This document shows, piece by piece, positions 5,001-41,758 of a DNA stretch of 64,000 nt (positions within the stretch are counted from its first letter, which is position 1; the number at the start of each line of letters is the position of its first letter). This DNA comes from Epiperipatus broadwayi (Eukaryota > Animalia > Onychophora): contig JAQFVV010000001.1 of the NCBI GenBank assembly GCA_028023455.1, forward strand, positions 14,632,001-14,696,000, given 5' to 3'. The translations under genes were made by a program, and so were the position numbers. The notes beneath the pieces were generated by a model. It was not told the DNA's origin, ran no database searches, and worked only from the letters and a program-made list of their open reading frames with translations.

Positions 5001-5374
5001 AATTCAATCCTAATTTAAATAGTTAGCTCTCTAGCGTAATGGAATGTTCACAAAACCCAGGGCAATAAATGAATTTTAAGAAAGTATAATATAAAAGAAA
5101 CAGTGAGAATTAAAACCAAATTTAAAGAAGTAGATTGTTTTCCCACATATACAAACTTTAAAAATCTCTCATGGCTTAGACTTTATAGACAAATGATATT
5201 TATATAACAAAATATTAAAATAAACCCTATATATAAAAAACACAATTTCACTTCTGATGAGATTTTACAAAATTCTGCATGATAATTAATACGTAGGCGC
5301 TAAAGATCAAACACAAATGAGATATACAATGTAAATACTGTTAAAAATAATTTTAAAATCGCTATAATATATTT

Positions 5375-5610
5375 TAATATAGGGTATATGAGCACTGACT
5401 TTCACACCACCCACCTCTCTCCATTCTATCTAATAACACTGTGTAAAGATGATAGTCTGGACCAACTGATGATTGCTGGTTTAGCATGAAATACGTATAT
5501 TGGTGATTATTTGTCTTTTCAGCATATATGTGTTTAGGTGTATCAGTGTTATTAGATAGAGTGGAGAGAGGTGGGTGGTGTGAAAGTCTGTGCTCATATA
5601 CCTTATATTA
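5375..5610. mobile_element. MITE-like element with 67-bp terminal inverted repeats enclosing a hammerhead ribozyme
   Basis: 5375-5441 and 5544-5610 are inverted copies with 3 mismatches in 67 bp and TA-rich termini. The spacer is 102 bp. Confidence 0.9.
5461..5504 (+). ncRNA. Type I hammerhead ribozyme with short palindromic stem III
   Basis: ACCAA-CTGATGA-TTGCTGGTTTAGCAT-GAAA-TACGTA-TA-TTGGT: full CUGAUGA/GAAA/UH core. Stem I ACCAA/TTGGT extends via AAAGATGATAG/TTATTTGTCTTT, stem II is TGCT/AGCA, and stem III is the palindrome ATACGTAT. Predicted cut after 5499. Confidence 0.88.
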
Positions 5611-7559
5611 CATATATATATAGCCACAGGTATATAACAAGCCTGTGTTTCAGTTATTATAATATATTTTACGTAAAGAGCTAAATTGGTCTAGGAAAAA
5701 GTGATGGATTTTGCTTAAATAATTTAATAAATGACATTTTCATTTGAGGATTAATTGATGAATAATAGGAAACTTAAACTTTTAAGACTATTCCTATCAT
5801 TTTAAACTGTTTACAAAATAACAAAGTATAATACTAAAGAAGCTTCTCTATTAATTATTTAGTGGTAAAATTTACATCTCCTGCTATAATTTGATCAGAG
5901 AAAATAATAAATTCGAGTTTTAATATGCTCTTTGAATTTTGTACTTAACTTGGCAGCTTAGAATATATCAACATTTAAATAAATAAATTGTTGTATCAAA
6001 ATAATATGAAGTTCTAATAAGATTAAAACGGTTAAATTTTATAAAAATAAAACTAATGATGTATTTAAAGAAAGTTGTATAAACAATACATCCAGATATT
6101 TTAGAGTGAATAAATGGATATAAACTAATTATAGATTAATATTAATTTAAAACCAATGTTGTTAAAAGATCAGGGACTTGCGGCAAATGGGGTTACCTCA
6201 AAACATAGCTGGAGACAGACTTATAAAGGCAGGCTTTCTTGATTTATTCAGCATCACGGGCTAGATGTTGACAGCACTGGAGTAGCATCAAGCAGGTGGA
6301 GACAGAGTACAGAAGGTGAATAGTCTTCTTTTACCCCCATATTATTTAGATGAAACTTAAACTGGCTTGAAGTATATTCACACTGAGAATGACTCTAACT
6401 GATCATGATAGCCAAAATTTAGCTATTTATATGATTCAGCCTTATCTATCAGGATCCAATGTGCATGACGTTTTCTGATGAATTTCTCTGTGGTCAGCAT
6501 CTGCCTGTGTGGGAAATCTACAATGCTGCATTAAAACATGCCCCAAGGGTTCATTTTCTAATTAAAAAACCAATAACATAAATCTGATTTTCAACTTAAT
6601 TAAATTTCACAAGCTATCGTATTAAACAAAGCCTATTGAATTTGAGATTTGTAATGAAAATTTTAAAAAAAGAACTTTACTCACAAAAATGTGAGGAATT
6701 TGTTATATTCTATAAATAAGAAATTTTATAATACAATGGCTCTTAACACTTACATTTAATAAAATAATAAATGTATAAAATATGACAAAATTACAAAGTC
6801 TGCCTTATAAATACTGAATTGACTATTTTTACATATTATTTGTGTATATTTTTTAAATAAAATATTATAACCTGACTAAGTAGAAAATGAACTTTAATGA
6901 AAAAAAATCTTAAAACATTTGTCACACTTTATACACAACTGAGATTATGTTTACACTTATTGCCCATTTATTTTATACATAATTAATAATAATAACACAA
7001 ATAGTTTATAGCTTACACGTACTGATTATAAATATTGATGATAAATTATATATATACTACCACCTCAAGCAAGACAGGTGTCAATTAAGATATAAAACTG
7101 GGTTTAAACCCATACTAGTGCTGATGACATTGGCACTATAGGTGAAGCAGAAATATGTGTTATAATATTTCCAGTTTCAGTAAGAAACATTTAAATTGTT
7201 GATATTTTCATGGCATCACACAGATTAAGTTTAAATTATCCAATGCATGAATAATAAATAGCAGTCATGGTTAATCAGAGATATTGATCATTAATCAAAA
7301 TACTAAAATGAAATCAAAAATGTAAAAAGCTATAGTAAAAAATTTCATCTAATTTATTATAATTGGCCCAAAGAAATGAACACATTGATCTAATAATATA
7401 GATCATAGTAATATAATTGGATCCCATATTACATAAGTACAACCATGCTGCATAATTGCAGTTCTGGAAAATTTGAAAGCATATGGCATATCAGATGAAT
7501 ATTATTAATAAAATAAATGCAAGCTGATTAATTTTTTGCTTGACAATATAAAAAATGAG

Positions 7560-41490: not shown

Positions 41491-41527
41491 TATTTAATTA
41501 GAATTTATGTTTCCTCATGTATCCAAC

Positions 41528-41758
41528 TTTCCATTGCCCATGCCATATCATTTACTTAACTTTCCATTAGCCATGCCATATCATTTATCTATCTTTCCAT
41601 TGCCCAAGCCATATCATTTATCTATCTTTCCATTAGTCATGCCATATCATTTATCCAACTTTCCATTAACCATGCCATATCATTTATCTATCTTTCCATT
41701 GTCCATGCCATATCAGTTATCTAACTTTCCATTATCCACACCATATTACACACATAAC
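41528..41758 (+). repeat. 33-bp minisatellite, 7 copies
   Basis: TTTCCATT starts at 41528, 41561, 41594, 41627, 41660, 41693 and 41726. It lies inside open ORF 41507-41833 (FPL.MPYHLS. repeats). Confidence 0.95.

Follow-up and report, generated by a model that had tools for sequence, protein, structure and literature searches.

A hammerhead-bearing inverted repeat in the genome of Epiperipatus broadwayi is probably a Penelope-type insertion of a non-autonomous retrozyme

The insertions made by Penelope-like elements (PLEs) show 5′ truncation, partial tandems, an adjacent inverted and 5′-truncated copy, and a tail of 30-40 bp at one end (Craig et al. 2021, PMC8557442, where Evgen'ev and Arkhipova 2005 is cited on PLE insertion architecture), and the PLE hammerhead is located in the repeated terminal part of the element. 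[quoted passage not shown] In type I hammerheads of metazoans, helix III is typically short and palindromic and the ribozymes function as dimers within tandem repeats; where such a hammerhead stands alone, poor cleavage is expected (PMC4209133).

The family represented at the locus described here is similar to PLE insertions in its 5′ truncation, partial tandems, inverted copy and one-ended tail, and likewise in the position of its hammerhead within a repeated terminal part (PMC8557442). It differs in the length of the tail, which is approximately 45 nt as compared to 30-40 bp, and in the absence of a reverse transcriptase or GIY-YIG ORF, which makes it non-autonomous. The traits listed above for non-LTR retrozymes are all shared, as the family forms arrays with a period of 474-475 bp, the window has a GC content of 20-32%, and the loci around the copies are free of ORFs of at least 150 aa except for a single unrelated zf-RVT fragment. 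At 475 bp, the unit lies slightly above the 150-450 bp given for non-LTR retrozymes (PMC7229834), and stem II, closed by G-C in the latter, is closed by U.U in this family and by G.U in its sister families. Head-to-head arms or a one-sided tail are not mentioned by Cervera and de la Pena, in whose paper the word 'inverted' does not occur, nor are such arms and tails discussed in the 2026 preprint, and the architecture of the present family consequently constitutes independent support of a different kind. Taken together, we consider that positions 5377-5657 represent a single young insertion of a non-autonomous, ORF-less hammerhead retroelement, i.e. a non-LTR retrozyme, made by the PLE integration machinery, and we put the probability of this reading at roughly 0.87. 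Read in this way, the element is of a known kind, a non-LTR retrozyme mobilised by Penelope-like elements, and not a new element class.

The locus was identified in a 64,000-nucleotide stretch of contig JAQFVV010000001.1 (positions 14,632,001 to 14,696,000, assembly GCA_028023455.1), hereafter the window. In an initial annotation positions 5375-5610 had been described as 67-bp terminal inverted repeats (TIRs) enclosing a 102-bp spacer that is largely a hammerhead ribozyme. The dimensions given there hold, the arms of the inverted repeat 5375-5441/5544-5610 being 67 nt in length, 96% complementary to each other and separated by 102 nt, and the hammerhead (5445-5519) accounts for 75 of the 102 spacer bases. 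The arms are not termini, however, as the borders of the element are marked by a 14-bp direct repeat, and once this target duplication is removed the insertion proper corresponds to 5377-5657, or 281 bp. When the 475-bp unit (reference copy L025:1501-1975, with unit position 1 set at window position 5440) was compared to the window by blastn, unit 1-225 aligned in forward orientation at 5440-5666 and unit 105-183 in inverted orientation at 5441-5361, and the unit homology extends 47 nt beyond the right arm of the inverted repeat. The parts of the insertion are as follows.

5363-5376, no strand: left target-site duplication TATAATATATTTTA, 14 bp, an exact direct repeat with 5658-5671
5377-5441, minus strand: inverted 5′-truncated arm, the reverse complement of unit 105 to about 171, placed by blastn and by its end after removal of the duplication
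5440-5657, plus strand: forward arm, unit 1 to about 216, with the long outer end, placed by blastn and end position
5611-5657, plus strand: one-sided tail, about 45 nt long and confined to the forward arm, from the unit match and the outer-end positions
5658-5671, no strand: right copy of the 14-bp target-site duplication, an exact direct repeat with 5363-5376

The locus is a single insertion event bounded by one duplication and made up of two head-to-head arms from the same kind of template, and the 67-nt 'TIR' is best read as the unit stretch common to both arms. An inverted repeat extending to 5361 (81 nt) was considered and rejected, as 5363-5376 is the target duplication; the likeness of the latter to TA-rich unit sequence is a matter of chance or microhomology. 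The inverted arm has the short, tail-less outer end, carries no hammerhead and shows 2 differences from the family consensus in 65 nt. The forward arm comprises the ribozyme-bearing part of the unit as a solo copy and shows 2 differences from the consensus in its first 171 nt, both at family-polymorphic sites. As both arms deviate from the family consensus by only 1-2%, the insertion is young. The arms differ from each other at 3 of 65 aligned positions, and at unit 164 (5603 versus 5384) they differ at a family-polymorphic site, where C is found in 43 and T in 15 of 63 aligned copies. The arms may have been copied from two template units or molecules, or a mutation may have occurred after insertion; a single template molecule fails to explain the difference at unit 164 unless such a mutation followed. 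A 6-bp hairpin with an 11-nt loop (CACAGG at 5625-5630 paired with CCTGTG at 5642-5647) was noted in the tail, and hence in the long-end arm only, and might function in recognition at the template's 3′ end. Elsewhere in the window, at 41515-41746, a 33-bp tandem repeat is present in 7 copies with 85% identity and an alternative period of 99 bp, which is unrelated to the hammerhead insertion.

Interrogation of the 5.6-Gb AT-rich genome with 5375-5610 yielded approximately 41 scored places, nearly all of which match only positions 66-236 of the query (171 bp, representing the ribozyme side and the right arm). The expectation that most copies would carry both TIRs together with the hammerhead was not borne out, since both arms were found at just one other of these places, L002. 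Alignment of the junctions revealed 6 extra bases at L002, a different duplication and other arm lengths. A common origin of L002 and the window locus as copies of a single hairpin element was therefore rejected. L002 is an independent insertion, and the hairpin form is not a propagating unit; one near-coincident hairpin is to be expected given tens of thousands of insertions. The family forms arrays with a period of 474-475 bp, and across 30 loci it is almost always organised as a minus arm or array followed by a plus arm or array, such that the 5′ ends meet, with the unit coordinates of the inner junction varying from locus to locus. Counted by hand, the first 100 exact matches to the core on contig C1 include 15 neighbouring pairs in minus/plus orientation within 1.1 kb and none in plus/minus orientation. 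At L028:859-1728 a short variant was observed in which the units comprise only positions 1-214 and the period is about 238 bp, indicating that arrays can form from the ribozyme-bearing part alone.

Target duplications and outer ends were analysed in 16 insertions for which both borders were available. Each of the 16 is flanked by its own exact duplication, which ranges from 8 to 16 bp (median 14) and differs in sequence between insertions, while mismatched-locus controls averaged 5.8 bp and never exceeded 10 bp; the target duplications are thus variable and not of one fixed length. With the duplications removed, the long outer end was located at unit 212-216 in all 16 insertions and the short outer end at unit 163-173 in 13 and at unit 136-151 in the other 3, while a tail of approximately 45 nt was present on one arm and missing from the other in every case. 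The outer ends are unequal and sequence-defined, and every unit contains a conserved, covarying hammerhead fold. The 8-mer TATTACAT occurs twice in the unit, at approximately 167-174 and 214-221, and both canonical outer ends are situated at, or up to about 8 nt before, the TATTA of this 8-mer, with one TATTACAT copy being used per outer end in each of the 16 insertions. The position of the outer ends at TATTACAT, together with the observation that most target duplications start with TA, suggests priming by microhomology. It is a tentative and rather doubtful extension of this idea that the unequal ends are not random and that PLE-type integration primes two cDNA arms at two defined, microhomologous sites on the template; if true, two-site priming would provide a testable rule for how inverted arms and tails come about.

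The inner ends of the arms were also informative. Nine of approximately 42 inner ends map to unit 1-7, and a TATA-like run is present 23-32 nt upstream, for which reasons unit 1 is taken as the putative 5′ end of the template RNA. None of the approximately 42 inner ends coincides with the predicted cleavage site (unit 60/61), and there is therefore no trace of a cleaved linear RNA having served as template. The 3-kb loci around the copies contain no ORF of at least 150 aa with the exception of the zf-RVT fragment at L003, where a 274-aa open frame (L003:2350-3171, minus strand) displays a borderline zf-RVT match of 27.1 bits against a cut-off of 27.5 and is probably a fragment of a non-LTR retrotransposon adjoining the family copy. 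Pfam searches of the four longest ORFs of the window and of one locus ORF returned nothing relevant.

The hammerhead of the window copy, which is situated in the forward arm, can be divided into the following elements.

5445-5519, plus strand: type I hammerhead motif, read from sequence, family conservation and covariation
5445-5519, plus strand: stem I, with 5445-5465 paired with 5500-5519 and a UGG bulge at 5458-5460
5466-5472, plus strand: CUGAUGA of the hammerhead core, read from sequence
5473-5487, plus strand: stem II of 5 positions and its GGUUU loop, with U10.1 at 5473 and U11.1 at 5487
5488-5490, plus strand: G12-A14 (GAA) of the hammerhead core
5491-5498, plus strand: palindromic stem III AUACGUAU, containing A15.1 (5491) and U16.1 (5498)
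5499, plus strand: A17, with a predicted cut after A5499, read from sequence

All conserved core positions are present (C3 U4 G5 A6 N7 G8 A9, G12 A13 A14, A15.1-U16.1 and H17, at 5466-5472, 5488-5491 and 5498-5499), and the assignment as a type I hammerhead with an extended stem I and a palindromic stem III, made in the initial annotation, is upheld by the core as read from the sequence and by family conservation. Stem II is closed by a U.U mismatch at positions 10.1 and 11.1, and the usual Watson-Crick pair (G-C) is absent. Natural hammerheads with U10.1-U11.1 do exist and U-U is the best tolerated mismatch (PMC3088659), from which it follows that a Watson-Crick 10.1-11.1 pair is usual and not obligatory. 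The dimeric metazoan type I hammerheads of newt satellite 2, Schistosoma Sm-alpha and the PLE min-HHRs (PMC4209133) share with the window motif the type I topology, a helix II of 4-5 bp, a helix I interrupted by an internal bulge, and a very short helix III whose palindromic sequence can extend into an intermolecular helix of two copies; the window motif is set apart from these by an unusually long helix I of approximately 18 paired positions and by the U.U at 10.1-11.1.

The Rfam hammerhead models (RF00163 and relatives) gave no match in the window at gathering score, and none at E ≤ 10 on the 401 bases from 5300 to 5700; RF00163 assigns no score to the window motif, whereas five other sites in the genome attain the gathering score of this model, at 34-40 bits. 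The bare motif CTGATGA..GAAA..TH was found 6 times as against 2.1 occurrences expected by chance in the AT-rich window, and is thus not rare by chance. Owing to the count of the bare motif and the lack of an Rfam match, the case for a real hammerhead is made by the family and not by the single copy. When the 102-nt spacer is folded to minimum free energy (MFE), the hammerhead fold is not obtained, and for the 84-nt ribozyme segment the MFE structure keeps stem I and re-pairs the core, at -15.7 kcal/mol as compared to -5.3 kcal/mol for the hammerhead fold. Such re-pairing is expected for a motif held by non-canonical contacts, and the failure of the MFE structure to include the hammerhead fold says little either way. 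As a single hammerhead without a partner nearby, the solo copy in the window is probably idle or inactive.

Evidence from the family is more extensive. The exact 26-nt core with U at position 10.1 occurs 41,607 times in the genome, and the same core with A, C or (mostly) G at this position a further 17,275 times, as compared to 0 matches genome-wide for reversed-pattern controls; the 10.1-11.1 combination is U.U in the family of the window and mostly G.U in sister families. With approximately 41,600 exact cores genome-wide the hammerhead is clearly present in the family copies, and is not a one-off insertion into the window element. In an alignment of 35 diverse genomic copies CUGAUGA, stem II and GAA are invariant, and when the hammerhead structure is imposed on the alignment 90.8% of cells pair, as opposed to 36-52% for slid-partner controls. 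Compensatory changes in distal stem I were observed at alignment columns 14/68, where A-U is replaced by G-C (20 versus 12 sequences), and at columns 16/66, where U-A is replaced by C-G, while stem III stays palindromic despite a changed sequence and length, being the 8-mer AUACGUAU in one group and the 6-mer AUGCAU in another. The stems covary, and this covariation lends moderate support to the three helices, the events being few and the structure being derived from the same 35 sequences. A column-by-column comparison of variability in 63 near-identical copies was underpowered, since these sequences are only 2-3% apart.

Contigs from four public runs that carry the labels of four other organisms were aligned to one unit at a likeness of at least 80%; these contigs are of unknown kind, probably DNA, and speak to conservation, not to expression or ends. 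Summed depth over unit 8-87, which corresponds to the ribozyme, exceeded the depth in the flanking bins roughly 5- to 100-fold (and more), the homology stopped at the ribozyme borders, and inside unit 17-82 no variant at a share of at least 10% was present other than at one reference-copy-specific position. Together with the invariance among the 35 copies, this depth profile bears out the prediction that the core is conserved above its flanks. The ribozyme is therefore the conserved module of a large superfamily and a real, selected motif; the hammerhead is a constant part of the unit and its best conserved module across diverged families and in the four-organism contigs. The combination U10.1.U11.1 characterises the most successful lineage (approximately 41,600 copies, and dominant in the four-organism contigs), and the fold may have been kept there for a role other than fast cleavage. 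A different hammerhead family, with the pattern CUGAAGAG..ACC..GGUCGAAACCGGUC, was encountered at L031-L042 (e.g. L032:1501-1544, L036 and L038). It combines G10.1-C11.1 with the palindrome ACCGGU and supplies most of the best RF00163 matches, some copies reaching the gathering score at 34-37 bits and some carrying a partial duplication of the 5′ half of the ribozyme, and at a first look approximately 396,000 rough candidates were counted genome-wide.

The appearance of the single copy is that of a MITE, with a 67-nt near-perfect inverted repeat, flanking direct repeats and a short, non-coding, AT-rich interior, and the initial annotation had accordingly proposed a MITE-like, TIR-bounded DNA transposon that is moved by a transposase and packages a captured hammerhead repeat, a combination regarded as undescribed. 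This explanation is scarcely tenable in view of the remainder of the family, as nearly all copies match one side only, so that the arms are not conserved termini, and the 'TIR' is internal sequence of the 475-bp tandem unit, i.e. the arms are pieces of a tandem retroelement unit. Moreover, the position of the junction differs in every insertion, the outer ends are unequal by approximately 45 nt in 16 of 16 cases, copy length varies, as does the length of the duplication (8-16 bp), and the sole similar hairpin (L002) is dissimilar in junction, duplication and arm lengths. The inverted repeats are consequently neither terminal nor conserved as those of MITEs are, and the related proposal of a PLE repeat captured and spread by a DNA transposase is contradicted by the same variable junctions and duplications and by the lack of conserved termini. 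Palindromes can also arise through fold-back repair, and a one-armed insertion that was later converted into a hairpin by local DNA rearrangement, be it inverted duplication or replication fold-back, could be reconciled with arms that differ at 3 of 65 aligned positions. We consider such an origin very improbable, given that the 14-bp duplication flanks both arms together, that the two-arm layout with a short and a long end recurs in 16 of 16 independent insertions, which a random event would not reproduce, and that 15 of 15 close pairs are in minus/plus orientation.

A third possibility concerns the role of the locus, namely that host or element has co-opted the hairpin as a small-RNA precursor, in which the loop of a stem of approximately 65 bp self-cleaves to give a nicked dsRNA. 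The predicted hairpin is indeed very stable (-141.7 kcal/mol for RNA of the 236-nt stretch, z = -20.9 as compared to shuffles), and, with both arms located outside 5445-5519, it is compatible with the hammerhead fold. The long-hairpin microRNA models in Rfam also match, albeit on structure alone and far below their gathering scores: the plant families MIR839, MIR7533 and MIR1023 were reported at window positions 5361-5625 with E-values down to 3e-16, and a plant microRNA precursor was rejected as an identification because matches of this structure-only kind are an artefact of any long perfect hairpin. Three points speak against a small-RNA role: the family does not preserve the hairpin as a unit, a divergence of 1-2% from the family consensus marks the insertion as very young, and poor cleavage is expected of a single hammerhead whose helix III is short and palindromic (PMC4209133). 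We therefore regard such a role as having little probability, and it would be compatible with a PLE-type retrozyme insertion only as a secondary side effect.

The suggestion in the initial annotation that came closest was that of a hairpin retroelement mobilised by PLEs; its link to PLEs holds on account of the architecture, while the inverted repeat around which it was conceived corresponds to a by-product of integration that is known for PLEs (PMC8557442). In the retrozyme insertion that we favour, the 475-bp unit normally resides in tandem arrays with one type I hammerhead per unit, and the hammerhead would most likely cut multimeric transcripts as a dimer formed through the palindromic stem III. 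PLE reverse transcriptase and endonuclease would then make the arms as cDNAs at a staggered target cut, and two cDNA arms of the element RNA would be fixed head-to-head inside that one cut. For the window insertion, the first arm would run from the probable 5′ end of the RNA (unit 1) to the long 3′ end at approximately unit 216-219, and the second, truncated at unit 105, would terminate at the short 3′ end at approximately unit 169-171. The inverted repeat, and with it the hairpin in a transcript, would thereby be a by-product of integration and not a designed hairpin.

Mobilisation of the family by PLE enzymes is suggested by analogy, and it is the architecture that connects the family to PLEs. 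A search of the genome for GIY-YIG gave approximately 10,242 candidate sites, at which open frames reach 901 aa in length. Frames of 800-901 aa are present at several of these sites, and several occur in minus/plus pairs separated by a few hundred bp to a few kb, examples being C12394:20942626-20950119 and C6351:2388234-2389184. Such sites fit the presence of many, possibly intact, Penelope-like elements inserted head-to-head.

For the annotation of the Epiperipatus broadwayi genome, inverted repeats around a hammerhead are to be interpreted as PLE-type retrozyme insertions and not as MITEs or microRNA-like hairpins, and the plant MIR models, which match by structure alone, present a trap for automated annotation. 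[quoted passage not shown]
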